A program made the position numbers and the translations under genes. The notes beneath the pieces are model-generated. The model was given only the letters and a program-made list of their open reading frames with translations. It had not been told where the DNA came from and ran no database searches. Positions 1,296-48,964 of a DNA stretch of 50,558 nucleotides are shown piece after piece. Source of the stretch: Pelomyxa schiedti (lineage: Eukaryota > Protista > Evosea); contig JAHLWZ010000612.1 in NCBI GenBank assembly GCA_020536535.1, positions 1 through 50,558 of the forward strand, in the 5' to 3' direction. Every line of letters starts with the position of its first letter. The stretch's first letter is position 1.

Positions 1296-1341
1296 TTGTT
1301 TCTGTTTTGATTGAAAAAGGAAACCAACGGATCAACCGTTG

Positions 1342-3100: not shown

Positions 3101-3165
3101 CAGGAAGGACTTGGAGCCACTCGGGAATTAATCTTGATGCGGGTACCTACTATCCAATCACGTAG
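3101..3165 (+). pseudogene. Inverted degenerate fragment of family A exon 3
   Basis: cag|gaaggacttggagcca...tactatccaatcac matches the exon 3 acceptor, EGLGA and YYPIT, in opposite orientation to the genes. Confidence 0.55.
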
Positions 3166-3479
3166 TTTCGAGTGTTTAAACTAACTATCGATGCGTAGCG
3201 AGATAAGGAGGGAACAAAGTATTTATTTATTTTAATTGATCTGGTGGAGTTTGTGGTGAGAGTGGTGTTGCTTATTCGCCCTGAATTCCGACTTCTGAGG
3301 GTATCACTTTCACACAACAAGTTTCAGCTTCTGTGACAGTACCTTATGATCGAAATCAACAACAACCCCCATGAACCAGGAGCATCACGACCGCTAAGTG
3401 CCTAAAAACAAAGATCTACTATCACTGAAGAAAAGACTAAGCACTCCCGTTCATGGCTCTTCTACTAGACAAAGTTCAT

Positions 3480-4593
3480 TTATTCACTAATATTTTTGAC
3501 ATCAGGGAGGGTTGGGTCCATGATGAACCTGTAGGCATTCGGGCGGCAGCACATGTTCACAGTTGGATACAATGGAAGTGATGTGTCAACGTTGTCGTAT
3601 CTCACAAGTGGCTCCATGTTCCTGAACACATCAACATGCCCTCGCTTCTTGTCTGCTGCCTCAAATGTCAGCATGAACGAGAACTGGTCTGTGGTGGCTG
3701 CTGGTGCCTGGTCAGTGATAACCAAGTCAGGAACTGTGCTGCCTTGCACTCTGGTTGCCACAGGACCAAAATTGAATGACAAGCCAAACGAATTGACACC
3801 ACGCTTGCTGAGCGATGGGAATGTGATTGGGTAGTAGTCTCCACCTCCACTTGATGCTGAATCAAGAACCATTCCCATGAGTGTGCTGCTGGCTCCAAGT
3901 CCCTCCTTCAAGGAAGCCCCACATGTGAGAACAAAGAATCACTTGATGACGATTTGATGAAGAGTGGGGGGGGGGGCACAACAAACCTGACACGCACCTG
4001 GCGTTAACTTGACAACTTCAAATGCCCAGTAAACTCTGTCGCTTGGGCCTGCTATTTCTTGCAGTGATGGTTCCAGCCACGCCAACCTTCCTCCAACACT
4101 GCTGCCACATCTACCATCAGCAGGGATCCACACCGGAGTGTCATCAACAACTTTGATTCCCTTCCCAATTGTCTTCCACGTTCCTCTCCGATAAACACAA
4201 ATGTCCCCTGTGAACAAAAAGGGTGTTGAAAGAAAAACCACAGGCGATGAGAGACACAACAATCAAACACACACCCAGCAGGAACTCGACGATGATTCTT
4301 GCCACAGACAAGGGTGAAGATGACGTCATCATGACGCTGTGCGCGCCGGCCCTCTCGTGCCACCCCGCCAAAAACGCAACTGCTTGCTCTTTCGTTGTGT
4401 GTTTGTTGTGGTTGTATTTGTAGTCGTTTTTGCTGCAGTTGCTTTTGTTGTTGTTGATGGGGGTGGCTGTGGTTGTGGCTGTTGCTGCTGTTGTAGTTGT
4501 TGTGGTGGTGGGTGAGGGGGCACCAGTTACACTGATGACAGGTGCTGATGGTTTATTGTCGGTTTTGCGCTTTGTCTTAAAGAAAGACCACAT
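3480..4593 (-). CDS. Family A hypothetical protein, copy 3
   Basis: Starts MWSFFKTKRK with a T/N-rich N-terminus; same 3-exon structure; ends DPTLPDVKNISE*. Confidence 0.75.
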
Positions 4594-8556: not shown

Positions 8557-8877
8557 AAGTGTGCACACAACACACTGGACCTAAGGGGGTTCTGGTTATT
8601 CTCCTAACTTTACTTCATTCCTGAGCCTGGGTCATGGTGACGTAACATCTACTGTGGCTTGGTAGACATCCTCCCCAGGTCCCTCTCCCAGCTCGAATAA
8701 CAATTAAAAGATCTCTGTTTCAACGAGATCACAATGGTCATTAAATTGGTTGAGAAAACGAGTGTTGAACCGAGTCAGGCACTGCGTTGCCTTGCACTCT
8801 GGTTGCCAACGTGTTGGTATTAAAGTTTCGCAGAGCGGATGCACGGCAACAATAGGGCTGGACTTATGAATAAACCA

Positions 8878-9914
8878 TCATTCGCTAATATTTTTGACAT
8901 CAGGGAGGGTTGGGTCCATGATGAACTTGTAGGCACTTGGGCGGCAGCACATGTTCACAGTTGGATACAGTGGGAGTGATGTGTCAATGTCGTTGTATCT
9001 CACAAGTGGCTGCATGTTCCTGAACACATCAACATGCCCTCGCTTCTTGTCTGCTGCCTCAAATGTCAGCATGAACGAGAACTGGTCTGTGGTGGCTGCT
9101 GGTGCCTGGTCAGTGATAACCAAGTCAGGAACTGTGCTGCCTTGCACTCTGGTTGCCACAGGACCAAAATTGAATGACAGGCCAAACGAATTGACACCAC
9201 GCTTGCTGAGCGATGGGAATGTGATTGGGTAGTAGTCTCCACCTCCACTGGTCGCGGAATTGAGAACCATTCCCATGAGTGTGGTGCTGGCTCCAAGTCC
9301 TTCCTACAAGATGCCCCACATGTGAGAACAAACAATCATGATTTGATGAAGAGTGGGGGGGGCACAACAAACCTGACATGCACCAGGTGTTAGCATGACA
9401 ACTTCAAATGCCCAGTAAACCCTGTCACTTGGGCCTGCTATTTCTTGCAGTGATGGTTCCAGCCATGCTATTCTCCCTCCCACACTGCTGCCACAGCTAC
9501 CATCAGCAGGGATCCACTGTGGAGTGTCATCAACAACTTTGATTCCCTTCCCAATTGTCTTCCACGTTCCTCTCCGATAAACACAAATGTCCCCTGTGAA
9601 CAAAAAAGTCAACAACTTTGATTCCCTCCGATAAACACAAGCAAAAAAAGCATGACGGGAACACCAAGCAAACACACACCCAACAGGAACTCGACGATGA
9701 TTCTTGCCACAGACAAGGGCGACGATGACGTCATCATGACGCTGCGCGCGCCGGCCCGCTCGTGCCACCCCGCCAAAAACGCAACTGCCTGTTGTTGTTT
9801 CGTTGTATACTTATTGTGTAGGTCATGTTCATTTACGTTGTGGACTGTGGTTGTTGTGGGAGTTGCTGCCGTGGGGGTGTTGCCTCTAATCTTTTTCTTC
9901 AACAGCCTAAGCAT
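8878..9914 (-). CDS. Family A hypothetical protein, copy 4 (near-identical to copy 1)
   Basis: Starts MLRLLKKKIRGN, has the same exons, and ends DPTLPDVKNISE*. Confidence 0.75.
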
Positions 9915-9948
9915 TTGTTTTGGTTTTTGATTGAAAAACCAACCGTTG

Positions 9949-11169
9949 ATGTCGATCAACGAACCGTTGCCGATACGCTCCACGAGCATAGCTCTCTACG
10001 CCGCAAGCCAATTTATCGCCCTGGCGTGTTGTTCATTGCGATCCCACAATTCCGGTTCCAACCGCGGCGTGGCGCCTTCGTCGTTGCGTGAGATCGGCCA
10101 GCAGTGGGTGTGCTGCACGGAAAGGCTGGCGTACCTCAACCTCACTCGATGTTGCTCAGTGTCCTGCCCCGACATGTTCGGTGCCGCGGACGACGATTCC
10201 GGGGCGTCGTGGGAGACCGAGGTGCGGAGCAATTGTGGGATCGTTTTTGGCGTGTCGCCCACCCTCGGCGTCACAGTTGCTCCGGTTTGCGTCGGCACCA
10301 AAGTTTTCGGCGTGACGTCATCGAGGGTGGCAGTTGTGGACACTGGGAGGCCTGGAAGTGACATGCCTGATGGAAAGAGGGTGTGTGCAATTGATGTTGT
10401 CACTGGCCAGGAGGTGGCTTGTCTTGCTGAAGACCACGTCCAGAGGAAATATGTGTGCAATAGCCAGTGGGTGGTGGCTTGGAGCCCCATTGGGTCCATT
10501 GATATCTGGAAGGTTGTGCGCTCTGTGCCTTGTGATCGGCACACTGTTCCGTTTGAGGTTGGCTCTGATGTGAGGTTCTTTGGATTGACCAGTGGAAATT
10601 CTGCAATCGGAAGTGGTAACGAGCTGTCAATTCTGACGAGCCACGTTTTCTTACAAATCGACATTGAGGAGGCATTTAATGTAAACAGTACTGAGCGAGA
10701 GTGGCCGAGGGCGCGGTACGAGTTGACTCTTGGATTCTCTATTGATCCAGGACCTCCAGAAGTTTCAGTGACCAAGAGCAAGGAAGGAACAGGGAACCCT
10801 GAACTGTACTTGATTCAGTGCGGTGGCGGTACTATGTGCCACGCGAACACAGGGCATAGCAAATGTGTGGGGTGGGGGCACAGGGTGCATTTCGTTGATG
10901 ACAACCACCTGTCCTTGTCCCAATGGACCCCCGAATCCACCTCTGTCAACATCAAGGTGATTGATAGCCCTTGTGATTATGATAATGGTCCATGCTGTGC
11001 ACAATTCGCCTCACCAGGGACGATGCATGAGGTTTACAGTTCACAGGGATTCGTGTTTGTTTGCTTCGAAGAACGGCCACAGATCATGGTATACGATGCA
11101 CTTGCTGGGACACACCTCCTTACCCTCACAATAGAGGGACAAATCACCTCCCTCGACCTCTGGCGATGA
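9949..11169 (+). CDS. Family B intronless hypothetical protein (~406 aa, beta-rich)
   Basis: Long uninterrupted ORF. Shares the N-terminal SQF.A motif, the central NSQWVV/NSKWLV motif and the C-terminal V.DAL.G motif with 31477-32679. Confidence 0.8.
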   Translation: MSINEPLPIRSTSIALYAASQFIALACCSLRSHNSGSNRGVAPSSLREIGQQWVCCTERLAYLNLTRCCSVSCPDMFGAADDDSGASWETEVRSNCGIVFGVSPTLGVTVAPVCVGTKVFGVTSSRVAVVDTGRPGSDMPDGKRVCAIDVVTGQEVACLAEDHVQRKYVCNSQWVVAWSPIGSIDIWKVVRSVPCDRHTVPFEVGSDVRFFGLTSGNSAIGSGNELSILTSHVFLQIDIEEAFNVNSTEREWPRARYELTLGFSIDPGPPEVSVTKSKEGTGNPELYLIQCGGGTMCHANTGHSKCVGWGHRVHFVDDNHLSLSQWTPESTSVNIKVIDSPCDYDNGPCCAQFASPGTMHEVYSSQGFVFVCFEERPQIMVYDALAGTHLLTLTIEGQITSLDLWR

Positions 11170-21849: not shown

Positions 21850-23237
<1,388 letters not shown>

Positions 23238-23356: not shown

Positions 23357-23545
23357 AGCGTGAGGCTGATGGTGGATTGTTAGCCTTGCTCTGTCACTGC
23401 GTCGTGATGTGGGCACATGGTAATATGTAGACATTCTCATATTTTTCTGAGGGAATGTGTGCAAGTTCCCCAGTGACAGTGTTGTTGATCGTTTGTACAG
23501 GTATTTTACACAGGAAACACCCCACACAAAACCAAGTCAAAGAGG
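23357..23545 (-). pseudogene. Deleted remnant of the 3' end of family B gene 31477-32679
   Basis: Blocks ggctgatggtggattgttagccttgct, gtgatgtgggca..tggtaata.gtagacatt and caagttccccagtgacagtgttg match 31480-31810 with internal deletions. Confidence 0.7.
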
Positions 23546-23546
23546 C

Positions 23547-25885
23547 TTAGTGCCTTGCTGAGGACTGTGGTGTGCTTGTGGCGGCTACGGGTTTCTTGGG
23601 TGGAGCGGCTCTCTCTGTGTCTTTCTGTTGTGTGTATGAGTGGGATGAATGGAGCTTGGCGGACTTGTTGCACTCAATGCATAAGACCGAGCGGGCTGCC
23701 GCTGCTGCGGCCGATGCACTGCCACTGCCGGAAGAATTCGCGGCGGCAATGGCGGCGGCTGGTGACACTTGCAGCGGCAGTGATATTCCGAGTACCTTTT
23801 GATTGGATCAGTTAAATAGTTTTAGGGGGTTTAGATTTTTGAATCGGTAGCACACCTCATACTGACTGCGGAGACAGCGTGTATGGTACGAGTGTGGGCA
23901 GGTGAATATGCACACATCTTCAAATGGTCGTTGGCCAAAGAGAAACCCAGAGCATACACAACACCTTAATTTAACCGTTATCAGCAAAAGAATTAAGTCG
24001 GTTCCCACATACTTTATTTGCAGTGCTTTGGCACCTTTTTTGCGTGCAGTAAATAAGGTATCAAAAAGGCGAACGCAGTCAGCCTGTAGAATTGTGGTGC
24101 AACCCTGCCGCAGAGACATCTTGATGCAGAGTTAAGTTCATTACTTCAAATGATGTAATGGAGATTACCAAATTGTGATCAGCGAGTATTTTTACAAGTC
24201 TTTTCTGGAGGTTCTCAATATAAACGTGATCGGGAATCCTTCAAAACATAAATTCGTAGATGGAGTGGAGGGGAAAATACTGGCTTATCAAAGTGACGGG
24301 ATCAAGAGGTCCCATATTGTCAAGAAGTGCTCCCAGGAATTCCCCGCCAGAGACTCCCTGAGACAGAAAAAAAAATTACGGTATGAGTAACAGTGTATAT
24401 AGGCTCGCACTCACATGAACTGAAGCTGCCTTTGCCGTGAGGTCGATTGCACGTTTTACCTGTGAGTTTGTTTAGGACTTATTTTTCGATTTTCCTTTTA
24501 TCCGTACAAAGAGGTTCCACAGCTCGGGGTCGTTTTGGGATTGTACAAATTCGAGGGCCTTGGCAAGGAATTAGTTGAATTTGGCTACTACAAAATAATG
24601 AGCACCTCTTTTACATTCTGAACTTGGTACATCAAGATGACAAGGGCATCTTCAAAATTGCCCATCCTTGAAAGAAGTAAAGCTTGCTCGGGGTACAAGT
24701 TTAACTTCTTGCATATTCCCAATGCTGGAAGGGTTATTTCATTAACTCACAGGCACTGCTAAGTCAAGAAGAACATTCAGGGGCGCACCCTCATCCAAGT
24801 CATAATGCACACTGTGAATGAGAAACGGTCTCAGTGCCGGGTACTCATATTTTGCATAAAGCTCCACTTGTAATTTGTGGTATTCTTTCGTGGAATTTGG
24901 TTCCCGTTGGAAGAGTGTGTGTAAGTACTCATGAAGCAGTTTCTGATCGAAACGGCTCAGTTGTTGAACTGCTTGTGGAACCTGTTCCAGAGATTGTGAG
25001 GTTTTAGGTACTTTGTGCAGAATCTACATACTGCGATTTTGTCAGTGTTTGAGATGAGTAAATTCATTGTTTCTTTGGCATCGACTTGGAGAAGTTTTCC
25101 AATCTGGTTGGACACTGATTCATAGAGGTGATGTCTGCGAGAAAATATTAATACGACTATTGCCAGAAGGAGACCTACTTTTCAATAAAATTAAACACGC
25201 CTCGATGCCTGATGTCCAAGTAGATCTCAAGAGCTTTCTTTGGTTCGTTGTTGTTGGTGTACCTCAAGACAAGTGAGAGTCCGGAAAAAAAACTAACACA
25301 TACAATTGAGCAAGACCTAATTTATGTTTTTCAGTTGGAGTGATAGTTTTCATAGCAATTAAGATTTCTTTAACGTCAAACAGGGATTCCCAGGCTGAAA
25401 TTAACTGCAAAAACCTATCTGGATCACCTGTTTATATTATGAGAGGCAATAAAGAGGGGAAGGTTGCTCACATCGAAGGAAGTATATAATTACATTGGTG
25501 TACGTGACAGTTTTGAGTGTGGGATTTCTGGTCGGAATATAATCAACTAATCTCTATATACACAAATTGATTGGTCCACGATTGATTGGTGGTGGAATTT
25601 ACTGTCATCTGTCCATGCTCTGTAAAAGTTATGATCCATTTTTCCCAGAGTTCTGGATCAGAGCCTAAAGTTTCTACACAAACTCTTACGGCCTTGGTGT
25701 AATCTTGTTTTGCTGTTAAGTGTTAGACTAATTAGCACCCGTGAAGGTAAACTACAAATCAAGTCATTCAGATAGCTCTCCACAATTCGGGCATATTTCT
25801 TGGCGCCTTCTGGAGTGGTCTTTTCATGTTCGCACTCCATAAGTGCTTCAGCAAATCTAGAAAGGGTAGAAAATTGGCCCAACCA
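23547..25885 (-). CDS. VPS41: VPS41 homologue copy A, 3' part (clathrin/CHCR repeat and RING-H2), truncated by gap
   Basis: Near-identical to 26520-28875. LLSRMGN, RING CCVC...FTCPHSYHTRCL...CIEC. Confidence 0.82.
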
Positions 25886-25903
25886 GGGGGGGGGGGGGGG
25901 GGG

Positions 25904-26519: not shown

Positions 26520-29500
26520 CTACAGGCTTAGTGCCTTGCTGAGGACTGTGGTGTGCTTGTGGTGGCGGCTGCGGGTTTCTTGGGTGGAGCGGCTCTCTCT
26601 GTCTCTTTCTGTTGTGTGTATGAGTTGGATGAATGAGCTTGGTGGTATTGATACCTTGGCGGACTTGTTGCACTCAATGCATAAGACCGGGCGGGCTGCG
26701 GCTGCTGCGGCCGATGCACTGCCACTGCCGGAAGAGTTCGCGGCTGCAATGGCGGCGGCTGGTGATATTTGCAGCGGTAGTGATATTCCGAGTACCTTTT
26801 GATTGGATCAGTTAAATAGTTTAGATTTATGAATCGGTAGCACACCTCATACTGACTGCGGAGACAGCGTGTATGGTACGAGTGTGGACAGGTGAATATG
26901 CACACATCTTCAAATGGTCGTTGGCCAAAGAGAAACCCGGAGCATACACAACACCTTAACCGTTATCAGCAAAAGAATGAAGTCGGTTCCCACATACTTT
27001 ATTTGCAGTGCTTTGGCACCTTTTTTGCGTGCAGCAAATAAGGTATCAAAAAGGCCAACGCAGTCAGCCTGTAGAATTGTAGTGCAACCCTGCCGCAGAG
27101 ACATCTTGATGCAGAGTTAAGTTCATTACTTCAAATGATGTAATGGAGACCTACTTCCAAATTGTGGTCAGCGAGTATTTTTACAAGTCTTTTCTGGAGG
27201 TTTTCAATATAAACGTGATCGGGAATCCTTCAAAACATAAATTCGGAGATGGAGTGGAGGGGAAAATACTGGCTTATCAAAGTGATGGGATCAAGAGGTC
27301 CCATATTGTCAAGAAGTGCTCCCAGGAATTCCCCGCCTGAGACTCCCTGAGAGGAAAAAAAAATTACGGTATGAGTAACAGTGTATATATACTCGCACTC
27401 ACATGAACAGAAGCTGCCTTGGCCGTGAGGTCGATTGCACGTTTTACCTGTGAGTTTGTTTAGGAATTATTTTTCTATTTTCCTTTTTATCCGTACAAAG
27501 AGGTTCCACAACTCGGGGTCGTTTTGTGATTGTACAAATTCGAGAGCCTTGGCAAGGAATTAGTTGAATTTGGCTACTACAAAATAATGAGCACCTCTTG
27601 TACATTCTGAACTTGGTACATCAAGATGTCAAGGGCATCTTCAAAATTGCCCATCCTTGAAAGAAGTAAAGCTTGCTCGGGGTACAAGTTCAACTTCTTG
27701 CATATTCCCAATGCTGGAAGGGTTATTTCATTAACTCACAGGCACTGCTAAGTCAAGAAGAACATTCAGGGGCGCACCCTCATCCAAGTCATAATGCACA
27801 CTGTGAATGAGAAACGGTCTCAGTGCCGGGTACTCATATTTTGCATAAAGCTCCACTTGTAATTTGTGGTATTCTTTCGTGGAATTTGGTTCCCGTTGGA
27901 AGAGTGTGTGTAAGTACTCATGAAGCAGTTTCTGATCGAAACGGCTCAGTTGTTGAACTGCTTGTGGAACCTGTTCCAGAGATTGTGAGGTTTAGGGACT
28001 TTGTGCGGAACCTGCATACTGCGATTTTGTCAGTGTTCGAGATGAGTAAATTCATTGTTTCTTTGGCATCGACTTGGAGAAGTTTATCAATCTGGTTGGA
28101 CACTGATTCATAGAGGTGATGTCTGTGAGAAAATATTAATACGACTATTGCCAGAAGGAGACATACTTTTCAATAAAATTAAACACGCCTCGATGCCTGA
28201 TGTCCAAGTAGATCTCAAGAGCTTTCTTTGGTTCGTTGTTGTTGGTGTACCTCAAGACAAGTGAGAGTTCAGGTAAAAGAAAAATCTAACACATACAATT
28301 GAGCAAGACCTAATTTATGTTTTTCAGTTGGAGTGATAGTTTTCATAGCAATGAAAATTTCTTTAACGTCAAACAGGGATTCCCAGGCTGAAATTAACTG
28401 CAAAAACCTATCTGGATCACCTGTTTATATTATGAGAGGCAATATAGTGGGGAAGGTTGCTCACATCGAAGGAAGTATATAATTACATTGGTGTACGTGA
28501 CAGTTTTGAGTGTGGGATTTCTGGTCGGAATATAATCAACTAATCTCTATATATAGACATTGGTCCACGATTGATTGGTGGTGGAATTTACCGCCATCTG
28601 TCCATGCTCTGTAAAAGTTATGATCCACTTTTCCCAGAGTTCTGGATCAGAGCCTAAAGTTTCTACACAAACTCTTACAGCCTTGGGGTAATCTTGTTTT
28701 GCTGTTAAGTGTTAGACTAATTAGCACCCGTGAAGGTAAACTACAAATCAAGTCATTCAGATAGCTCTCCACAATTCGGGCATATTTCTTGGCGCCTTCT
28801 GGAGTGCTCTTTTCATGTTCACACTCCATAAGTGCTTCAGCAAATCTAGCAAGGGTAGAAAATTGGCCCAACCAGGGAGGGTAGGATGATACTTGTGCTT
28901 TTCAAGCAACCAGTCAATGTGGTCATCCATGTCTCGGGGTCTGGCAACAACGATATCCTTTGGTGCCACCAAAAAGAACATGGCCTCCTCTAGTGAATAC
29001 TCGAGTCTGTATGCTGTTGCCTACTTTTTGTTTTAAAATCGAAAAACCGTCGATTTTGTCACAAACGTGATAGTCCTTATATCCTTCAACTGGTACTGCA
29101 TCAGACACAAATTCCCTACCACCTCTTGACATAACTCTGAGTTCTGGGTGGTACCTGTAGGCATGTAAATTCGAACTTAATTTGTTTGCCGGTAAACCTT
29201 TCTGGTACCCCCACAACAGGTCTTCCCTCTGGATCGGTATTCTCTTCAATGTACGCCAGTAGGACAAGCTGACTTCCATATGGAGCGACTCCGCTGATGA
29301 AAAAGTCCGTCTTAAACCTTGAATGTCATTAAGGGGGAAATTATGTGAAGAGAATAAACTTGGCTGATATTTGCAAAAAGAACCCTGCTTGGTCTGTTGG
29401 GGGTCTCTCCTTGGAAAAGTTGTTGGTATAAAGTGTGTGAGAAGGAAAATGTAACCTTGACTTCGCAAATTTTAACACCATCGGCCCATCCAATAATAAG

Positions 29501-31186
29501 TGTGCGCTCATCTTCCCAACACAAACAACACCTGAGATGGTTGGGAAATAAAACAGTTACAAGTGAACAACGAACCGATATAAATCTGGGCGAGGAGAAC
29601 CTGGTTCCCTCGGAACAGTTCCAATTTGTTGATTTGAGGAGACATCCCAGACACGGATGCCTGTGTCATTTGCCCAAGCAATGAACTGTCTGTGTGTTTT
29701 ATGTAATTGTATACAATAAGCGAAAAGCGTACCCCTTCCACTTGATTGTGTGAATTGCACCTTGCCCCTGGTGTATCACACAATCTTGTGTCGTGAGCAC
29801 TCCTGAAATGTTGAGTGAGACATTGCACTATAGAAAGGATCTTTCACCTTTTACATTTACCATCAAATGTCCAGATGACCCACCCACACAATACTGGCGG
29901 GTATTCTTTCGACCATAATTTGGGTCTATTGAAACCGCCTTTATTGGCCTATGGTACTCACACATAATAACTTCTTTTGCCATCAGGGCATTAATCACAA
30001 CTCGACCTTGGTGAAGAATGAGTGCAGTATAACAGGATATGATAAACAGTACCATCTTCTGAGCAACTTGCGAGGTAGGCACCGGTGCCATCAATACTAA
30101 TTTCGTTTACAGTGTAGTGGTGGCTCCTACGAACTATTAGCACTAAAACCTTTAAGAAGAATAAAGAAAATACTCAAAAGAGCTGGTTTGATTGCCTTGA
30201 AAATCGAGGATGAAAATCTTTCCTGTGTGCGTTCCCAAGGCCTGAATTTCTTGGTGAATGGAACATGGGGAAAAAAGTGAGCACATACAAGAAATTTAGC
30301 ATGTATGGCAATACAAGAGGCATTATTACTCCTAAGAATTTCGGGAACATTTCCTCCCTTCAAGAGTAAGGTTTTTCTTTTCGCCTTCAACGGCACATAC
30401 CAATCTTGTGTACTTGAGCTGTGGCTCAAGTTCCTCTTCATCCTCTTCCCCTTCATCATCATAATCGTTGTCCATGGAGTCTGATTCCTGGGGAGGGAAG
30501 AATTATTATGAAGAATGAGTTTTTCCCAAACATACAGGAAGAAACCCAGTCGTTAGAGAAGAACCGACACTTGGTAAGCCCAGAGACCCCAGGGACGGCG
30601 GTGGATTGGAGGTAGTTGGTGTTGTTGAAGTAGGAAGAGACGGCCCGAAGGCCTTCGAAATTGCTGGCTGTGCCGCAGTCGGATTTACTGCCGTTTGAGG
30701 GGCACTTGCAGTCGCAGTCACAGGTGCCGGTGTGTACTGTGTCGTTTGTGGTAGCGATTGCACAGCCAGCGGCGAAGGCGAAGGTCTGGAATACGCAGCA
30801 CCTCCGGGAGTTGTGTGTGTGTATGCAGCAGTATATGCCGGTGTGCTGTATTGCACTGGCGCGGTCGTCGTGGTCCTCCTCACGCCCCCGGGAGGCTGCT
30901 GGGAGGTCGTGGATGAGAGACCGACACGAGTGGCGGCTGGTGTGGTGGTGCTGCTGTGGACTGCAGTGGGTGTGTTTGTTGTTGTTGTTTGCTGTGCTTG
31001 TGCCGCCGGCTGCGGAGCCGATACTACCGGTCTTTGTTGAGGTGTGGAGCCGCTACTACCGGTGCTGCTGCTCGCGGCAACGAGGGGGCTGCTCGTGGGC
31101 GTTGCGCGCGGGTGAGTGGCGGTTGAGTGCGTGGTGGTTAGGCCCGCCGTAGCACGCTTGAACGCATCTGCTGCTCCTTTGAACAT
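26520..31186 (-). CDS. VPS41: VPS41 homologue copy B, full length (HOPS subunit; S/T/P/Q-rich N-terminal extension)
   Basis: EEEPEPQLKYTRL, LGTHTGKIFILDFQGN, LASCSEDG, IAWANDTGIRVWD, LIIGWAD, FFLVAPKDIVVARPRDMDDHIDWLL, C-terminal RING-H2. Confidence 0.9.
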
Positions 31187-35072: not shown

Positions 35073-38000
35073 TTATAAATTGCCATGAATTACAGTAGTT
35101 TTTTGTTGTTGTGAGTGAATCCTTGATATAACTTTGGTGTGACAAGAAGGGCACAAGAACCTGTCCCTCAATCTGGTAAATGAAGACGTTTTATCTCCAA
35201 AAGGCACCTATATTTCCTGTTAACAGCAATCACCATAACCACACTATCTCCTTCATTGAAATAATTTCGAATTTATGTAGAAGCTATCTTTTTCTAGTGT
35301 CATACCTGGCACAAGGAGCAACACAAGCAGACAGTGTGACAGTATCTACCATCAATATTAACAGCAAAGGATCCCCCTGGTATTGTCTTCTGACATACAA
35401 AGCAATTTGTGTCCTGCAGTGGTCTGTTATTGTTGTTGTTACGGGAATAACACCCGGGGCAGTAGAACCGGCCCTGTGTCTGTGTTTGAGGGTTAGTCGT
35501 AAAGGGGAATTATGAAGGAGAAATGATACTATTCCAAAGCTAGAGGGTGTGTTGGAACCGCAAGTGTGACATACAATACAGTCACTGTGTACTTTCATGT
35601 TCCGGCCTGGAATCTGGGTGCCGGTTGGTTTGTTTTGTTTTGCTTTGCTTTAGTAATATATGTATATGGGGAAGAAGCTACATACAAGCTTGTGGGGGGT
35701 AGCGGGTGTGATTGCGGTGTTGCATGCCATGCAGAGGTCTTCTGGAAACGGAGGAGGTGGTATGAATGCGGATTCCGGAGTGAGAGAGGGGGGAACGGGG
35801 CTGGGGCAGGGAGGGGGACTGTCATTCCGCGTTCCTTGTTCTTCATACGGCGTTGTATCTGTCTTTGGAAGTGGTGGAGGATTGAGTGACAGTGCCGTTT
35901 GGAGCATTTGGTCATATGACTGTAGTTCTCGTGGGGATTCTATCGGTGATGTGTACTCCATATCTGGTGAGAGCTCTGTTTCTGCGGGCAGAGGAAGGTC
36001 TGTCTCGGGAAGAGAGAGATCCGCATCTGGAAGAGACTCTGTGAATGACTCGGGAGAGTTCTCCATGACGGTTAGAAGTTCCATCAAGTAAGATTGCATG
36101 CGTTCCTGCTGCTTGAGTGCTCTGTTTCTCGTTCTATTTTCCTTGAGTAGTTGGTGGTGAAGCCTTTGGCGTTCTTCCTGTTGCTTTCGGAGTTCGTGGA
36201 ATTGTGCTACTGCTTCTTGCTTTAACTGTTCATCAGACAAATGGTTAAGAAGGCTTGATCTTCGCTTTCGTTGTTTTTGCAGTTCGTTTTGCTGTTGTTG
36301 GAGTTGCTGAATCACTTCAAGCTGGGCATCAATTGGAATAGTCTCCCCTGATGAAAAGTCTTTGTCATTAATTGGCGGTGATATGTGATCGAAGCCAGGG
36401 CTTCCTTCCTCACAGAGAACTGGTGGTTTGAATTCACCTTGCAGAACAGTGCTCTCGGGGGGCGGAACTTGTTCACTGGAAATTTTAGGTGGTCCTTCCG
36501 CTGGCGGGTTCTCTGATAATGCATCCACTACTTGGTCTGATGGGGGGCCAAGAAGTGAATGACAAGGGGCAGTAGGGCACGAGAGTTGTGGCTTACGACA
36601 TCGGGTGTGAATGCATGGTGGGGCCACCGGGGAAATCTCCGAGGGAGAGGTGGGTGGGTCTAGGGGAGGACGTGGGCTCCTGGTTTGTGGGAATTGTGGC
36701 TTAAGTACTTGGAGGCATTCAGGGAGAGCCGGGCTGGATAAGCAAGGTCTCACGGGGCTCTGAGTCAGTATGATGATGGATAACTCCAGTAATACTGGTG
36801 GTGTGGGAGTTCCAAGAGGGGGCCTGGTGGAACTTGCAATTGCTCTTCTCGTTTGTCTGAGGCACTGAACTGCGGTAGGGGTCACTCTGGTTGATATAAC
36901 TGAGAAGCTCCGTAGCCGTTGTAGGTCCATGGGCTTCTCAGGCTCAGTTTTTTTAGAGAGATGGTCCATTGGACCACATGGACAGGTTGCCTCACTAGTG
37001 CATCAGTTATTTGTATAAATATTGATTTGAGATTACCCAAGGATGCAACTACAAACAGGTACTGGTGTATCCTTCTGTGTGAGCATAGGAGGACAGATAA
37101 CACAAGGAGTCAGTGTGGGTTTTGGGGGTGGAGTCCTGGGAGGGGGTTCGGGGTGAATGCAGTTATTGTACAACACTATTTCGGATAGGCAGGGTCTTTG
37201 GGACCGAGAAATTTGCGGCATCATCTCCGGAATCAGTTGCACTGGAAGTGTGGGAGTACAAAGGGCCGGTCTCATCTGGAAAATTTCGGGTCGAATCTCT
37301 GTAAATAATGTTAAATTGAGAATTACAGGGATATTACTTAGGAGGAGTACTTTTGGGAGTGAGAAAGGGAGTAACACTGCCAGAGAGGTGTTCCTTACAA
37401 AACATAGACATCTCTGAGAGGCAAAACTTAATCTAAGCACGAATGATTTGCTATTATTATTTATCCTTGGCAGTACTTGAATTGCATGATCAAATGGATA
37501 AGGAAGTGCTAATTGGGAACCAGAGGGACCACAGGCACTACAAATAAAGCACTCATTATGCCAAAAAAATCTTTCCTCCAGTTTTTCCCCAATTCGTCTC
37601 ACAATGTAGTTTTCATCTTCTATCAACTGATCACATGCCAGGCACGAGGGAGTCAAATCTTGCAAAACCTAGTGTTGTTTGAATCTCATTTTTCGAAGAC
37701 AGGGAGATACTCTTTTATTATTAGCTTGCAGAGCTGAAACTTTGTAGTTAAATCCCTGTGCCGGTATTAATTGTTTTTACTAATGACAACAGGAAAATTA
37801 CATCGCAGGTAGAGCACCTCGGAAACTTCTGAGTGTAATCATCGGCGGGAAGAGGAGTGTCACAGTGAATACAAGAGATGCACCCAGCGTGCCTGTTTCA
37901 TAGTGAGCTCACAAACTGCCACAATAGTTACCATAGAGAATCTTTTACAATGCAGGTTTTGCTACCGGCTGTGACTTCGGTGAGGCATTTTGGACATACC

Positions 38001-39729: not shown

Positions 39730-42700
39730 ATGGGAGCCAAGTGGCGGCGGGGAACCGGGGGGAAATGCTGTCTTTTTTGTGAATTGTTGTTCAAGTTTGC
39801 CCTGTGTGCGTTTTTGGCAGTGACGGGTCAGTTATTTCCCTTTTTTCCTTTTTCTTTGCTTTTGTTTTCCTTTTTTTTTTTCCCCTGCTTGCTTATTGTT
39901 GATATAGGTGTGAATGGTGGGAAATGGGCAGTGTGCACACTTGAGGGTCTTATTTCCTTGACAAAGAATGCTGTTATGGAGATACAACCGCCTTACATTG
40001 AATTGCAACATGTGCACCCTCCTTTATTCTCACTACTATTTATAAGTTTGGTGATTGTTTTTGACTGTGTTCCACTATCAGCAAATCGAATCTGTTGCAG
40101 CTGCACTTTCATTTCTTGAGGAGCATGCAAATTCTGAGGAAAGATTGCTCTGGAAGAGCTGGTTAGCAGATAAAATGACTATTGTAACAGATGGAGGCAT
40201 GCCTCCTCGAATTGCATATGCACTCTAACTTTTTCCCCAACAGATGTTGCTGGGTGTGCAGTTGATTATGACCCCAACAGATACGTTGAGGTTTCTTTTG
40301 TGAACCCTTTCGTTTGTAGTTTAAAAAAAACCTAGTCAGGGATCAGGAGCTCTGCCCTTGTACCACAGCCAGTCAATCGCTCAGAGCCTTGCCCCTGCAA
40401 TCCCTTTTGGTTGCAGTGGCTCAACTCAAACTATCCTGGTAACAACATCTCCCTCTGCTTTTTCTTATTTGTAACAGACCCGAACACTGGAATGCCATGT
40501 GACACTTACTGCACAGTGAGCAAGCACTTGGCCCTGTCCAGACATATAGCTGCTGTAGCAACAGCAAACACTGAAGAGCTTAAGTACATGCCCAGGATGT
40601 GGGGCTCCAGTACCAATTTCTCAGTTTCGTATGAGTCCACACTAAGTGAAAATGCAGTCACCATGTAACAGATCTGTCCCTTCACCTTGGTCAGTCTGGG
40701 TCGTGCTCTACAACACTACTTCTATGCATGTGACGCACAACCCTGACTTCAAACCCCCCTACATGCACTTGGTGGAACCACAAAATGACCCAGGAAAGAC
40801 TTCAAAATGGTCTGACCCATTTTACCCTCTTTATGGTTTGTGACCCTCCTTTTTTTTCACCCCTTTGTTACCATCCACTCAGATATGCAAATACAAGTGC
40901 TGACACCATTGTACCTCAGTAGTGGTAAGTTTGCATTCGTATTAATGTCGACAATTTCAATGGCGGACACAAGTAAATACATCATGGATAACATCATTTC
41001 CACTCCTAATGGTATGCGGGTAATACTTTCTGTGTTATCTAAAATTACTAGGATTCAATTTATTGCTGTCGAGCACAGGTTGTATTTTGTCAGCAAGCGG
41101 CCTGGGTTATACAACTTTATTTGGGTCATCACTCAATCTTACCGTTAAAAGCCAAGTCTGCCTCTCGAAAGCCACGGATTGGGATTTCACTGAGGTTGCT
41201 TAACTGTCTTTCAACGACTCTAACCACAACAGTTTTTGCTAGGCTTGGGAACCAGTGGCACAGACACAATCATCCACGGCAATGAGACATGGGTGTTCTC
41301 TCGTTACCCCCTTGATTTACTTCCTTGGACCGTTGTTATTGCCGTTCCTGCTAGTGACATCACATCAAGTGGGTTTTTTTTTGAGGTTTTCCATTTTGTT
41401 AATTGTCTTTTTTGAAAGGTGGGGAGTTCTCTGTCTCCCCAGAAGGACTTGTTGCAGAAGTACTTCCAACAGACCTCCATGCATCTTTTATTTTGCATGT
41501 CAACAATACCGGCGTTGTACCACTGATGTTAGAAGCCGTCAACATCTCTTCTTTCCTCTTGTGTGAGTATCGAAATCCCTGTTGAACAGAGTCTAATCGA
41601 TACCACAGACAACCTTACCGGGGTTCTTTACCTAAATGGATCAGAATCGGCAACGATACTGGTTCAATACATCGGTGATGAGCTACCGTTTTCAGGACGA
41701 GTCCAGCTCTACGTCCGAGATGCTGTCACTGAGTTGGGTCTCTGTTTCAATACGGAAATTTCCGTGCCAGTCACCATTTCAAGTGTGTTGAATAACAATG
41801 ATGTTCAAGATTCCTGTATCTCACTCAATATCAACCAAGAGTCACAAATTGCCTTCAAAATTGGAATCAGCATTGGAGCTGTGATTGCTTGCACTCTTAC
41901 TGTTGCTGTTGTAGTTCTGTTACTTGTAATTCGGCATTTCAAAAGAAAGGTTCAATTCTCTCCTATATCATTTAACTCAAAGGCTCAATAGATTTCGATC
42001 TTGTCACAACCACTGTCAACACACTTGATGAAGACACCGGCTGAAGCGGCAATCAAGAAGCTAAAAGGAATGCAGAAAAAGAGAAGTTGTTCCCTTCTCC
42101 CTTTCTTCAAAGAAATAAATGCACCACACTTTTTCCCTGAGTCGCATAGAACCTATTTTTGGCAAAATCCCGAACTCACCTCAAAAATAAATCAGAGCTG
42201 ACGAGAGAGGATTCTCTAGTTTTGGACAAAATCATCCAGTTAATTGCCTGCAACGGCTTGCACAGAGTTGATTTCACGGCGCAGAAGAAAGCTAGACTCA
42301 ATGAATGTGAGTTTTATTTTCCTAGCATAGCCTCTGCTGAGATTTTACAGGCTTGGATGATGAAGTTGATAAATACCTCTTAGAACATATTTCACCTTAT
42401 TCAAATGAAAGCAAGGCGTCGGATGACCAACACTCAGCTGTAATTGTGGAGTACTTTCCCAAAAACCAACTTCTTCAAATAATTCGTCTGACAGACAATG
42501 GAACAACATGCCACTTCCAATGAGCAATCTGGACGACTGGAACTTTTGTGTGTTCAAATACACTCCTGGTAATTTCCAACACTGTTACATTGTACTCACT
42601 GAAATCCCTAGATAAGGTTCTACAGGAAGTTGCACTTCCGATTTTCAAGACCCATGGGCTGCTGGAGAGGTTCCGTATCAACCAAGATTTATTTACAAAT

Positions 42701-44391
42701 TGGTTGGTGGGTATCGCTAAGGGGTTTGTTTTCTTCAAAAATAAATATCCTGTTGAATCCTCAATAGATACCTGAGTAATCCATACCATAACGTAATACA
42801 TGCTGCAGATGTTCTTCAAGCAGTTCATGTTCTGTTATTGAACTTTGCACCCTCGGTTTATGATAAAATTCCAGCCCTCTCTTTATTGGCACTCTTCTTT
42901 GCAGTATCCCTCTCTGAGTTTATTCATTACCTAATGCATTTCTTTATTTTTGCTCTAGGCAGTTATTCACGATTTTGGGCATCCTGGTGTGACGTACGTA
43001 TACAATTCCATTATTATTGACTGACAAACCACAGGAACAACTTTCTTTACCGGATACTTGATCCACTTGCATTGACATATAACGGGATATCGGTGTGGAT
43101 CATTTCCTATGTTGCAATAGCGCTCATTTCGTTACCAAACCAGATTCTAGAAAACATGCACCTGAAGGAAGCCTTCGAATTTACACTTCACAATTGCAAT
43201 TGGTTGTCATTCATGACTCAGGTTTCCTTTTTATGTGACTTTGATATTGTTATCTAAGTTACTTTCAACTGCAGCAAGAATTTTTGGAATTCCACCAAAT
43301 GGTTACAAACATAGTGTTGGCCACAGAGTACCTTATTCTCAAATCGTTTTCTTACTAATTTTTGTGTAGTATGTCCAAGCATGTGGAAGTATTAAGTCAA
43401 TTCAAGTCCAAGTTGACAGTGGATGGATTTGACCTCTCAAAAACAGTTTGTACAATTTTTTCCACGCTCTCCACTTACTTCCTTGCTAGGGAGATGTAAC
43501 ATTGATATTTCAAATGATACTGAAGATGTCAGACATCAACAACCAGACGCGGCCATGGGAAACAGCAAGAACCTGGACCGATCTCATCATGGAGGTGTGC
43601 GCGTGCGTGTGCGCGTGTTTGTGCAATCAAACAAAAAACTGAGCAATCTGCACTCACCTCCAACAATCCCGCAAACACACTATCACTCGCACTCGCACCC
43701 CACGAACCTCGCACTTCACTCAATCGGCTACAATGGGAATTCACGTCCACTGAACCACCCACTCGACAACGAAACAAACAATGCAAAGTTGAATTGGCAA
43801 TCATTCACGCACATATACATTATTTGTACAAACACTGAATTGCAATAGTTCGTCGCATACATACATATTATTATTTACACAAACATGCAGGAATTCTACC
43901 GGCAAGGAGACCAAGAGGCAGAGAAGTCACTTCCCAAGTCACCGTTCATGGATCGTGGCTCGACCAGGGTCCCCACCTGTCAGAGTGCCTTCATCAAGTT
44001 CTTTGTCTCCCCTGTCCTAGACGCCGTCTCCAAGTACATTGACAGCCAGTTCAAGTCCGAACAACCAACACACAAGAAGCCCACAATAACCCCCAATGGC
44101 AGCTCCCTCCTCCAAGTAGTAGTGGACCATGGCCACACCGCCGGGGGGCCATCATCCCCATCATCATCATTTGCCCACCAGCACACATCACACCTACCAC
44201 ACACCACATCATACAAGAAGCACAAACTGTGCACACTGCACGAGAACCTGGCATTCAACCAGAGCCAGTGGGCTCAAATGTCAACCGCAGCTTCCAAGCC
44301 CTCAACACCAGTAAACAACAACAAAAGGGACAGCCGGGCATCATCCAAGCCATCCACACCAATGTCCCACACCAACAACAACCAAACCTGA
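39730..44391 (+). CDS. Receptor-like class I cyclic nucleotide phosphodiesterase, copy 1 (signal peptide, Cache-like ectodomain, TM helix, PDEase)
   Basis: Hydrophobic N-terminus; WSDPFYPLY..TPLYLSSGKFAFVL; PWTVVIAVP; TM IGISIGAVIACTLTVAVVVLLLVIRHFKRK; PDE motifs YHNVIHAADV, HDFGHPG, LENMH, ATDM, KMSDINN, EFYRQGD, CQSAF. Confidence 0.9.
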
Positions 44392-44716
44392 AACCTGCAA
44401 GCCAAACCACAGTGGTGTGCCTAAAGCAAACCTCCTCCACTCCCAGATAGCAGCACACACAACCAGTCACCAATTACAAACACACATACATGCATGGCTC
44501 ACTACCACACTTACACAGGTAGCGAGTCCGTGACTCCATCATCACAATAACAAGAAAAAACATTGTTTGTTTAGTGTTCAACCCAATTGTTGTTAGGAGA
44601 ATTGTTTGATGTGACTTACGTGAACAATCACTAGTGAACGTGGGAGAAAAGGAGCTCGTACATGCGAAACAGCAACATTTTAGAAGTGAAGGTTCTAATA
44701 ATCAGTGCCATCAGCA

Positions 44717-47700
44717 ATGAAATGGGGCGTGACGGTGTGGGTGATTATGGGAGTGGTCATTGCACCAGCATGTGAGTTTGGCAACAACCAACACCACCAA
44801 CATTTTTTTGCTGACCCTTCTGTTCATTTTGATATCTGTCTGTTATAGTAATAGGAGTGAGTGGGGAATGGGCAGTGTGCACACTTGAGGGTCTTATTTC
44901 CTTGACAAAGAATGCTGTTATGGAAATACAACCGCCTTACTTGGAAATGCAACACGTGCGCCTAGAACAGAGTTTACTTTCACTCCTTTTTTTTTCTTTT
45001 TTTTCCTATCACTCTGAAGCTAAAACTCTTATTGACGGTCCTACAGCAAATTGAGACCATCGCGGCTGCTCTTTCGTTTCTTGAGGCTCAAGCTAGTGAT
45101 GATGAAAAGTTGTTGTGGAAAAGCTGGGTGGCTGAGAGAATGACCATTGTCACAGAAGGCGGTTCGTTCTCTCCTTCTTGTCTTCTGTTTGTTTGTTTCC
45201 CTTCGCTACATACCAACACATACCTTCCAGAGGTAGCTGGATGTGCTGTCGATTACCACTCGGACAGAGTAGTGGAGGTTTCCTCTGGATAGTCCGGTTC
45301 ATTTTCATTAACCAACAAACAGTCAGGAATCAGGAGCTCTGCACTTGCACCAAAACCAGTCAATCGATCAGAGCCTTGTCCCTGCAATCCTTTTTGGTTG
45401 CAGTGGCTCAACTCGAATTATCCTGGTGCTCAGTTTCTGAGACAATCCCCTCTCACATTCTGTTAATATTTATAATAGACCCAAACACTGGAATGCCTTG
45501 TGACATATATTGTACGGTGAGCAAGCATCTTGCATTGTCCCGACATCTAGCAGCGGTCGCTGATGCCAACTCCGTGGAACTTAAAAACGCTCCAAGAATG
45601 TTTGGAACTACCTCTAATTATTCACTCTCGTATGACTTTCCAAACTGAATTAGAATTACTTCTGACCCAATTAATTGCAGATCAGTGCCTGTCCCCTGGG
45701 CAAGCTGGATTAGGCTTTACCATACCACAGCAATGACAGTAGCACACGATTCGGACTTCGACCCCCCATACAGGCATTTAGTGGACCCACAAAATGACCC
45801 TAAAAAAGAGGCCAAGTGGTCTGAACCTTATTGGCCTCTTTATGGCATGCATTCAGAACACTGTGTCTCTCTTAACAACTATACAGATATGCAAATACAA
45901 GCACTGGTTCCATTATATCTGAGCGACGGGGATTACATGGGCGCAGTGATGTCTACAATTTCAATGGCCAAGACAAGCAAATATATTATGGAAAAGATCA
46001 TTTCGACTCCTCATGGTTTGGAGATTGGTTCCCATTGTCTTTGCAATGACCACTCAAGGATTCAATTTACTATTGTCGAGTGCTGGATGCATTTTATCAG
46101 CAAGCGATAGGGGTTGGACCAATCTTCTCGGCCATTCATTCAACAGTACAATCAAAAGTGAAGTTTGCATTGCAAATGCCACAAATTGGGACCTTGACGA
46201 GGTTATTGCTTGTAAGTGTTGTAAAGGCTAATCTACTCTTTCTGTTTTCTACCAACAGCTTTTGTCCAATTTGGGAACCAGTGGCACAAACACAATTATT
46301 CACAACAATGAGACATGGGTGTTCTCTCGTTACCCCCTTGACATGCTTCCCTGGACCGTTGTTATTGCCGTTCCTGCCAGTGATATCACGTCAAGTCCGT
46401 TTATCGATACGTCCATTTTCTGCTCACTCTTGTTCAGGTGGTGTATTCTCGGTCATCCCTGATGGTCTGTTTGCAGAAGTTCTGCCAGCAGATCTCCCTA
46501 TAACATTTTTGTTACATGTCAAGAATACTGGTGTTATTCCTGTGCTGTTTGAAGCTGAAAACATTTCCTCTTCCCTCTCCTGTGAGATTCTGCTTAACTT
46601 CACATCAAACTGCTTACAAATAATTCCTAGATAATATCACAGGCACTTTTGCTCTCAATGGATCAGAATCGGCAACGATACTGGTCCAATACATTGGCGA
46701 ACAGCTTCCATTTTCAGGAAGAGTTCAACTTTACGTCCGAGATGCTGTCACTGAGTTGGGACTTTGCTTCAAAACAGAAATATCAGTGCCAGTAACTATT
46801 TCTAGTACGTGATGGTAACCAGTGTGCCGCTTGACAAACTTTTCATAGAATCACAAATTGCCTTGAAAATTGGGATCACCGTTGGTGCCGGTTTGGGTTT
46901 CACGCTCATTGTTGCAATTGTGGTTTTATTAGCTGTTATAAGGCACTTCAAAAGGAAGGTATGCTGGCCTCTTGGCTCAAATTTAGTACCCAATAACAAA
47001 TAGATTTCGATCTTGTCACAACCACTGTCAACACACTTGATGAAGACACCAGCTGAAGCGGCAATCAAGAAGCTAAAAAGAATGCAGAAAAAGAGAAGTT
47101 GGTCCATTTCCTTCCCTTTTTTAATTTCCACTGCTCCTCGTTTGGGGTAATTTTCTCACTTACCAAAAAAATATCTCAGAGCTGACGAGAGAGGATTCTT
47201 TAGTTTTGGACAAAATCATCCAGTTGATTGCTTGTAACGGGTTGCACAGAGTTGATTTCACGGCTCAGAAGAAAGCTGGCCTCACCGAAAGTATGTTAAT
47301 CTATTCAGCGTTTAGTCATCTTCCACCACTATCAAGGTTTGGATGCGGAAGTCGACAAATATTTATTGGAACACATTGCGCCTTATTCAACTGAAACAAA
47401 TTCAGGTGAATCATCTGCTATAGTAGAGTAGTTCTCATTTAAATTGCTCAACCCCTCACACCTTTCAAGGGAATTGAACAATATGCCGCTTCCAATGAGT
47501 ACTCTGGATGACTGGAACTTTTGTGTTTTTAAGTACACTCCTGGTATGCCTTATCCATGTCCGACACTTTGTTTACTCCTATTTTTTCCTCAGATAAAGT
47601 GCTACAGGAAGTAGCATTTCCAATATTCCAGACTCATGGGTTACTAGAGAGGTTCCGCGTGAATCGAGATGTCTTCACCAGTTGGTTAGGGGGGATCTCC

Positions 47701-48864
47701 CAAGGGCAAGTTCTTTCCTCTATGCTCCAAAAGTAACTGAAATGTAGATACCTTAACAACACATATCACAGTGTGGTTCATGCTGCAGATGTTGTTCAGG
47801 CAGTCCACGTTCTCATGTTGAACTTTTCACCTGTTGTTTACGACAAGATTCCGGCACTCTCTTTGTTGGCACTGTTCTTTGCAGTTTGTTATTTATTCTA
47901 CATGTACCTTTTCATCATCCCCGTTTTCCATAGGCCATCATACATGACTTTGGCCACCCGGGTGTCACGTAATCCATGCTTCAACTTGGAGAATTTTAAC
48001 AAAAAACAGAAACAACTTTCTGTACCGGATACTTGATCCTCTTGCCCTTAATTACAATGGAATATCAGTGTGCTATTTCTTTTTCTCCTCTACCTATTAA
48101 TTAACGCAAAGAATTCTGTTGTAAAACTAGATTCTAGAAAACATGCACCTGAAGGAAGCCTTCGAATTCACACTTCACAATTGCAATTGGTTGTCATTCA
48201 TGACTCAGGTTTCCTTTTGATGTCATTTCAGTCTGACCATTTACACACAGCAAGAATTTTTGGATTTCCACAAAATGGTTACAAATATAGTGCTGTCGAC
48301 AGAGTAATACTATCGCTTACACATTTGCACCTAAATAATAATCACAGCATGGCTAAACACATTGAAATACTGAGCCAATTCAAGGCCAAGCTATCTGTGG
48401 ATGGGTTTGATGTCACAAAACCAGTTTGTTGGGAATTCTTTTTGCGTGCAATTAACACCCTCATTCATTAGGCTGACCTCACGTTGATATTTCAAATGAT
48501 ACTGAAGATGTCAGACATCAACAACCAGACGCGGCCATGGGAAACAGCAAGAACCTGGACCGATCTCATCATGGAGGTGTGTCCATTTATATGTAACAAC
48601 ATAAACAAACACGCAGCAACGCCAAACACCCCCGGCAACATTCTCGCACTTCAACCATGTCCATGAAATATACTTCCCAAGCACATCCACTCAACCACCC
48701 ACTTCATTGAACCAAACAATAGCAATCAACCAGTTGCAATCGCTCGCATACATACATATTATTATTTACACAAACATGCAGGAATTCTACCGGCAAGGAG
48801 ACCAAGAGGCAGAGAAGTCACTTCCCAAGTCACCGTTCATGGATCGTGGCTCGACCAGGGTCCC
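44717..48864 (+). CDS. Receptor-like class I phosphodiesterase, copy 2 (3' end lost in gap)
   Basis: Paralogue of copy 1 with the same exon order; WSEPYWPLY, TM IGITVGAGLGFTLIVAIVVLLAVIRHFKRK, YHSVVHAADV, HDFGHPG, EFYRQGD. Confidence 0.88.
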
Positions 48865-48964
48865 NNNNNNNNNNNNNNNNNNNNNNNNNNNNNNNNNNNN
48901 NNNNNNNNNNNNNNNNNNNNNNNNNNNNNNNNNNNNNNNNNNNNNNNNNNNNNNNNNNNNNNNN
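48865..48964. other. Scaffold gap (100 N)
   Basis: Run of N. Confidence 0.99.

Follow-up and report, generated by a model that had tools for sequence, protein, structure and literature searches.

The activity of eukaryotic class I cyclic nucleotide phosphodiesterases (PDEs) has been described as being under the control of cytosolic GAF, PAS, receiver, upstream conserved region (UCR) and calmodulin-binding modules (PMC10865986) and, in choanoflagellates, of light. Two neighbouring genes of Pelomyxa schiedti raise the question whether such an enzyme can also be controlled by an extracellular chemical sensor located on the same polypeptide. The genes, here called A and B, lie in tandem on the forward strand of contig JAHLWZ010000612.1 (assembly GCA_020536535.1), of which the whole stretch analysed, positions 1 to 50,558, will be referred to as the window. 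An earlier note on this DNA had proposed that both genes encode a Cache-like sensor connected by one transmembrane (TM) helix to a class I PDE. By analogy with characterised receptors, we propose that A and B probably belong to an old and expanded family of receptor phosphodiesterases that cross the membrane once and work by a ligand-gated dimer mechanism.

Gene models of the tandem pair

Gene A (39730-44391, + strand) comprises 26 exons encoding 1049 amino acids (aa). In the model built from the coordinates, all introns are of the GT..AG or GC..AG type with lengths of 38-110 nt, except for one of 296 nt, and a single open frame results; GC-AG introns account for 1.6% in the P. schiedti genome (PMC8887013). 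The model is identical to the NCBI protein KAH3760410.1, which is annotated as regA and was predicted independently by Augustus, PASA and EVM with transcriptome data. Gene B (44717-48864, + strand; KAH3760411.1) shows the same 26 exons with matching phases, and its 3′ end is lost in a scaffold gap of 100 N (48865-48964) interrupting the gene 27 codons into exon 26, ahead of the invariant PDE Gln. The first 867 aa of gene B equal KAH3760411.1, which has 896 aa and lacks the last exon. The tandem pair proposed in the earlier note is thus real, with both genes on the + strand and a shared exon structure, and the motifs quoted there for both genes are present in the coordinate-built models.

Since the assembly was derived from single cells by multiple displacement amplification, and since NCBI splits one paralogue (contig C564) and merges another (contig C693) with its neighbour, we considered whether prediction or assembly had artificially fused a Cache gene and a PDE gene. 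Against this, the open frame of gene A continues through ordinary short introns across the TM and linker region, the NCBI model is identical, and DNA read contigs tile the stretch from the ectodomain through the TM helix to the PDE; the four public runs represent DNA of one sample, with introns retained in the read contigs. In addition, the layout recurs in ~20 loci from two organisms, for which the trees agree (see below). An artefact is therefore very unlikely, and ectodomain and PDE are encoded on single genes, as had been proposed.

The ectodomain shows a dCache-type fold

Homology searches were performed exon by exon first and then with the database proteins KAH3760410.1 and KAH3760411.1. 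Exons 2-10 of gene A (39908-41368, aa ~36-396) encode an ectodomain with a dCache_1 fold according to AlphaFold2, Foldseek, VIA-align and profile matches. The AlphaFold2 model of aa 33-397 (predicted local distance difference test score 91.5) consists of a long stalk helix, an insert of ~80 aa with the conserved residues C140, C142, C163 and C167, and two PAS-like modules, one distal and one proximal. In structural alignments the top matches of this model were bacterial and archaeal dCache_1 domains (Z 18.6 for mmHK1S-Z3, 18.3 for Tlp1, 18.2 for TlpQ and 18.1 for Mlp24), with a root-mean-square deviation (rmsd) of ~3 over 220-243 residues. Comparison with ligand-bound bacterial dCache domains yielded Z scores of 16-18.6 over residues 8-365. 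Aligned to 3lib (Z 18.6, rmsd 3.1, 232 residues aligned), the predicted model contained the long N-terminal helix and the two stacked PAS-like modules. Foldseek agreed on the dCache_1 fold, with McpH as top match, and matches in the Atlas structures (TM-score 0.58-0.72) were mostly bacterial dCache receptors. Consistently, all 14 PDB matches of the family profile were dCache sensors (best E 6e-5 with profile A3 and 3e-7 with profile A5).

In Pfam, searches with single ectodomain exons gave no match, and the complete proteins remained below the curated dCache_1 cut-off of 45 bits (PF02743; 11 bits for A, 15 bits for B, E=0.014), paralogues reaching up to 34 bits (E 3e-8). This explains why the ectodomain is unannotated. 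Judged from the predicted model, the ectodomain of A and B is a divergent dCache_1 member by fold and not by Pfam threshold. The dCache-type sensor of the earlier note is borne out to this extent. The ectodomain of B (exons 2-10, 44849-46394) is 75% identical to that of A. A VWA insert was detected neither in the Pfam scans nor in the model of A, where the insertion site comprises only 19 residues.

The region following the Cache domain had been described merely as beta-rich. This holds true, and it can now be specified as a PapD/ASH/MSP-type immunoglobulin (Ig)-like domain encoded by exons 11-12 (41419-41782, aa ~397-503) and containing the conserved C490. Structural alignments yielded Z 11-12.5 and rmsd 2-2.9 over ~100 residues; matches to ASH/DUF1573 were weak. 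The corresponding exons 11-12 of gene B (46438-46804) encode a domain 78% identical to that of A.

Membrane topology

Exon 1 of gene A (39730-39826) encodes a basic N-terminus followed by a hydrophobic segment (aa 13-31, hydropathy peak 2.23), which is predicted to be a signal peptide or signal anchor. A signal-peptide-like segment is likewise encoded by exon 1 of gene B (44717-44771, hydropathy peak 2.29 at aa 4), and a hydrophobic N-terminal segment was found in all five family models with a complete start. Downstream of the Ig-like domain, hydropathy analysis showed a single TM helix (exon 13, 41840-41949, aa ~514-533) followed by a basic cluster as expected for the positive-inside rule, and exon 13 of gene B (46849-46958) encodes the same arrangement. 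In seven proteins, N-glycosylation sequons occurred ~3-fold more densely before the TM helix (1.5-1.9 per 100 aa) than after it (0-0.95). Moreover, most family members retain C42, C140, C142, C163, C167, C314, C340 and C490, and conserved Cys are confined to the ectodomain.

Taken together, the N-terminal segment, the TM helix with its basic cluster, the sequon density and the conserved Cys strongly argue that the Cache and Ig domains are exposed to the cell exterior or to the lumen of an organelle, where they would be glycosylated and disulfide-linked, and that the PDE is cytosolic. C42 and C490 possibly form a disulfide that would link the stalk helix with the Ig domain, as both residues are membrane-proximal and mostly co-occur; the paralogue on contig C496 is an apparent exception to this co-occurrence. 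The type I topology of the earlier note is thereby supported indirectly. The inverted arrangement, with an extracellular catalytic domain and a cytosolic Cache domain, has a counterpart in Dictyostelium PDE4, an amoebozoan class I PDE (PMC11988041), but would have to accommodate a signal-like N-terminus, a basic cluster after the TM helix, and an excess of sequons and conserved Cys on the Cache side, and we regard it as highly improbable.

The phosphodiesterase domain and its linker

The TM helix is followed by a conserved helical linker (aa ~540-607, exons 14-15, 41992-42306), which is 94% identical to that of gene B (exons 14-15, 47004-47290). The same linker also occurs in other Pelomyxa TM-PDEs with other ectodomains. 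Genes of this kind were observed on contigs C475 and C721, the ectodomain of the former resembling a periplasmic binding protein by eye only. No significant PDB or Pfam match was obtained that would relate the linker to the pre-catalytic region of PDE8 or to UCR2 of PDE4, which it may resemble.

Exons 17-26 of gene A (42495-44282) encode a class I PDE domain, which matched PDEase_I (PF00233) with E=7e-68 and 229 bits at a cut-off of 24.8 and aligned to PDE3B, PDE1B and PDE4 at E ~1e-52. The catalytic and substrate-contacting residues H710, H714, H752, D753, E782, H785, D863, N866, Q914 and F917 are all in place; thus the metal ligands (His, His-Asp, Asp), the catalytic His, the invariant Gln and the Phe clamp are kept. 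Before the last PDE helix, a low-complexity insert of 54 codons (44045-44206) maintains the frame; a related read contig carries 73 codons. For the partial domain of gene B (exons 17-26, 47470-48864), the PDEase_I match reached E=8e-47 and 160 bits, and the metal ligands are conserved. As gene B is cut before the PDE Gln, the intact PDE claimed for both genes is confirmed for A alone, the Gln/Phe region of B falling into the gap. One read contig, for which no change is listed in the Gln/Phe region, extends through this region as far as the last PDE helix. It shows a depth equal to that of the contig with B-type variants and may belong to gene B. Downstream of the gap, the DNA repeats 29475-30856 with 94% identity and is therefore probably not the 3′ end of gene B. 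Over its full length, the segment 48965-50558 corresponds to 29475-31066, the identity of 94% dropping to ~81% in the later part; it encodes a Thr/Pro/Ala-rich protein on the - strand and represents a duplication or mis-scaffolding.

A receiver domain was not found in A by Pfam at E up to 10, so that the NCBI name regA is a wrong, best-hit label. Both proteins are predicted to hydrolyse cAMP and/or cGMP. N866 of A occupies the position of N321 in PDE4 (PDE4D), and genes combining dCache, TM helix and class III cyclase are present in the same genome; for these two reasons, cAMP appears to be the likelier substrate.

The putative ligand pocket and the divergence of A and B

The membrane-distal Cache module with the putative ligand pocket (Y236, F256, Q265, T284) is encoded by exons 7-8 of gene A (40672-41011). 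Pocket positions were mapped by sequence, without superposition, through Mlp24/Mlp37 and a canonical Pelomyxa dCache. Canonical dCache genes also occur on contigs C1162 and C387 of this genome, where they are cut by the contig ends. By this mapping, R126, W128, Y144, D146 and D173 of PctA correspond to P234, Y236, F256, P258 and T284 of A, and B has the same residues except for Y in place of F256. Accordingly, the amino-acid motif dCache_1AA (PctA R126, W128, Y144, D173) is absent from A and B, which carry P234, Y236, F/Y256 and T284 instead. The strict Asp of the amine motif dCache_1AM (PctA D173/McpX D208; 10.1101/2023.10.26.564149) is likewise replaced by T284 in both, although five deeper-branching relatives retain it. 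The purine motif dCache_1PU (McpH W140, F167, D169) reads Y236, Q265 and L267, mapped via PctA W128/T155/A157. Purine binding, as suggested by the top Foldseek match to McpH, was rejected on these motif grounds, the match reflecting the fold alone. With the Asp of the amino-acid and amine sensors lacking, a neutral ligand can be guessed for A and B.

The earlier note had further suggested that A and B recognise different ligands, based on motif differences assigned to the pocket. This suggestion was not supported. Part of the motifs in question map to predicted helices that precede the pocket strands, and the core pocket positions are common to both proteins. Identity between A and B was lower for aa 190-290 (62%) than for the Cache domain as a whole, and 86% for the PDE. 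At a synonymous divergence (dS) near 1, the ratio of nonsynonymous to synonymous divergence (dN/dS) was 0.16 for the outside part and 0.11 for the inside part, with 0.13-0.18 for the ectodomain and 0.09 for the PDE. Accelerated divergence of the pocket was not found, exons 7-8 with dN/dS 0.17 resembling the rest of the ectodomain. The low ratios in all parts point to purifying selection on both copies. Within the family at large, a diversity of ligands is plausible.

Exons 2, 14, 22, 25 and 26 of A and B were observed to be nearly identical at synonymous sites (proportion of synonymous differences 0-0.19, overall dS ~1), and in one case (43850-43973 versus 48740-48864) the last part of intron 25 matches as well. 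Breaks in the read contigs are located close to several of these exons. The pattern represents either gene conversion in patches between the two neighbouring genes or a local collapse of the assembly.

A family present in two organisms

Exon-wise searches revealed at least 12 P. schiedti genes with the full layout, including A and B; the A-type order of parts was found on contigs C564, C633, C796, C812, C127, C693, C874, C414, C830 and C496. In three further genes (contigs C61, C813 and C291) a related Cache domain is joined directly to the TM helix without an Ig domain. Contigs C912, C821 and C1066 carry other dCache-PDE types, and the dCache-TM-class III cyclase genes mentioned above are located on C751 and C516. 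Several of these gene models were conspicuous. The C564 paralogue is split by NCBI into Pelo_7094 and Pelo_7095, and the annotation departs from the frame in the PDE, although homologous exons are present in order. KAH3759353.1 on C693, annotated as exocyst complex subunit 4, combines an integrin-beta/SIB-like VWA protein with a Cache-PDE gene and probably represents two merged genes. A copy on C508, apparently without the Ig domain, the TM helix and parts of the PDE, is possibly a decaying or internally deleted gene.

A profile search covering 1.8 billion proteins also detected exon fragments of the family in an intron-rich metagenomic eukaryote in ENA analysis ERZ21831265, which contains seven full-layout genes, among them one tandem pair, and one partial gene without the Ig domain. 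Its family ectodomains share 25-35% identity with those of Pelomyxa. The contigs (runs ERR12015700/01) reach 378 kb with a GC content of 39%, and several intron positions are common with Pelomyxa. A Vps35 exon was 68% identical to that of Pelomyxa and scored similarly against mammalian-type PDB chains. Possibly, these contigs derive from an unrecognised archamoeba genome. Word-based searches with the ectodomain retrieved only Pelomyxa proteins and one ERZ21831265 fragment; that proteins of Mastigamoeba and Entamoeba were missing counts for little in view of the limits of these searches. A scan of JGI metagenomes for the family found nothing; the family alignment is too variable for pattern scans.

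Trees were calculated from columns filled by exon-wise profile matches. The Cache tree and the linker plus PDE tree share their main groups, namely A and B with C564 and C633, C127 with C812, and the metagenome trio L012/L014/L016. A clade of 15 genes mixing both organisms was supported with 96/99 in the PDE tree and 90/95 in the Cache tree. Since the two trees largely agree and this clade contains both organisms, the fusion of Cache and PDE probably predates their split. Among eight paralogues, identity amounted to 36% in the ectodomain and to 54% and 53% in the linker and the PDE, respectively; this combination of a varied ectodomain with a fixed output resembles that of receptor families.

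Proposed mechanism

On balance we lean towards A and B being true ligand-gated receptor PDEs, in which binding of a metabolite on the outside is passed through a single TM helix to switch the class I PDE, and which would be part of a set of a dozen or more chemoreceptors in anaerobic amoebae. Such a receptor would work as a dimer. Binding of a small metabolite in the membrane-distal Cache pocket would cause a change relayed through the stalk helix and the Ig domain, so that the pair of TM helices is turned or shifted and the conserved helical linker alters the access to, or the pairing of, the two PDE domains. Local cAMP breakdown would then follow the outside chemical without a G protein, and the receptor cyclases and receptor PDEs of the same genome could form a push-pull set. 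The relay is modelled on bacterial dCache receptors and on Rh-PDE, a precedent for a membrane sensor that drives a class I PDE through a linker (PMC7644710). Purifying selection acts on all parts, and sensor and enzyme have been inherited together.

Several observations weigh against this proposal. Between the Cache domain and the TM helix lies the Ig domain of ~105 aa, an arrangement that differs from bacterial piston-type receptors and may uncouple the two. None of the three published dCache ligand motifs (amino-acid, amine, purine) is found in A or B. The linker is of low confidence in the predicted model, and its presence in TM-PDEs with different ectodomains means that its role may be that of a general dimer element and not of a transducer. 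Finally, the example of human alpha2delta shows that the chief role of a eukaryotic dCache protein can be that of an accessory subunit.

The Ig spacer and the shared linker leave room for an anchoring role or for indirect control. In the first case, A and B would be membrane-anchored PDEs whose Cache-Ig part serves dimerisation, sorting or adhesion, with an activity that is constant or set from inside by phosphorylation or expression. This would be in line with the loss of canonical ligand residues in A and B and with the position of the Ig domain, and for most apicomplexan TM-PDEs, in which no regulatory domain has been defined, control by phosphorylation is assumed (PMC10865986). Nevertheless, purifying selection has preserved a full two-module dCache fold in ~20 genes from two organisms, although it diversified faster than the output, and in the Ig-less genes on C61, C813 and C291 no spacer intervenes at all; a mere anchor is thus unlikely, although it deserves serious attention. 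In the second case, a ligand or protein partner would cluster, relocate or internalise the PDE, or pair it with a Cache-type cyclase, changing the place and not the rate of hydrolysis. The glycosylated, Cys-rich insert and the Ig domain would offer protein-binding surfaces for this purpose, and Cache-cyclases do occur in the same genome; on the other hand, the strong conservation of the juxtamembrane linker between A and B fits direct coupling, and we consider indirect control distinctly less probable than anchoring.

Direct gating of the PDE by an outside ligand, which we favour, can be tested by routine methods, because dCache domains fold alone and are suitable for thermal-shift screens. 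If confirmed, an extracellular chemical sensor on the same chain would represent a new control of eukaryotic cAMP/cGMP breakdown and a degradation-side counterpart of receptor guanylyl and adenylyl cyclases. Chemical sensing in protists would thus make use of bacterial-type domains and dispense with G proteins, possibly reading metabolites of the sediment or of endosymbionts. A validated member could also serve as scaffold for chemically switched PDE tools. So far the family has been found in two organisms, neither of which is genetically tractable.

Other features of the window

Apart from the tandem pair, the window contains a polyubiquitin-like locus (21853-23184, - strand) in which canonical units are accompanied by one or more divergent ubiquitin units, a 2.4-kb tandem pair of 95% identity (23543-25892 and 26524-28881), an unannotated gene family in four or more tandemly duplicated copies (213-4400 and 8800-10250) and a LIM-domain exon (37036-37665, - strand).

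Comparison with known systems

In the literature searched, which left out most subscription papers, no description of a Cache domain combined with a class I PDE was found, in agreement with the earlier note. Surveys of Cache domains name alpha2delta, histidine kinases, one Naegleria cyclase and one streptophyte kinase as eukaryotic carriers, and no class I PDE. The Mastigamoeba genome paper reports expanded cyclases and PDEs and makes no mention of Cache.

Among eukaryotic proteins, alpha2delta, CACHD1 and other dCache_1 proteins share the extracellular dCache_1 fold with A and B (PMC8915833; Z 17.4 for A versus 3jbr_F). These proteins carry a VWA insert and no PDE, whereas A and B have a PDE and no VWA domain. 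As the insert was reported for all eukaryotic dCache_1 proteins analysed in that study (PMC8915833), A and B constitute an exception to this statement, in addition to the corrected regA annotation. The Naegleria Cache-adenylate cyclase (PMC4822843) and Dictyostelium ACG (PMC11988041) are protist proteins with the same succession of ectodomain, TM and enzyme, but they make the messenger that A and B are predicted to destroy. Dictyostelium RegA and the membrane-bound PDE4 are amoebozoan class I PDEs, neither of which possesses a Cache domain (PMC11988041). RegA is soluble with a receiver domain, and PDE4 has two TM helices and an outside catalytic domain, in contrast to the signal segment and single TM helix of A and B.

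Two further systems are also similar in design. Bacterial dCache_1 one-component receptors, which comprise c-di-GMP PDEs and cyclases, adenylate cyclases, methyl-accepting chemotaxis proteins and histidine kinases (PMC4822843, PMC8915833), likewise combine an outside dCache_1 sensor, a TM region and a cytosolic enzyme in one chain. In A and B, however, the output is a eukaryotic class I cAMP/cGMP PDE and not EAL or HD-GYP, a signal segment replaces a proven first TM helix, a Cys-rich insert and an Ig spacer are added, no HAMP domain was found, and the known ligand motifs are absent. Rh-PDE of Salpingoeca rosetta (PMC7644710) shares the succession of membrane sensor, linker and class I PDE and is controlled directly without a G protein, but it senses light by an 8-TM rhodopsin, whereas A and B have a single TM helix and a folded ectodomain as putative chemical sensor. 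The design of A and B would thus work like that of one-component receptors and of Rh-PDE, and it belongs to neither of these named families.

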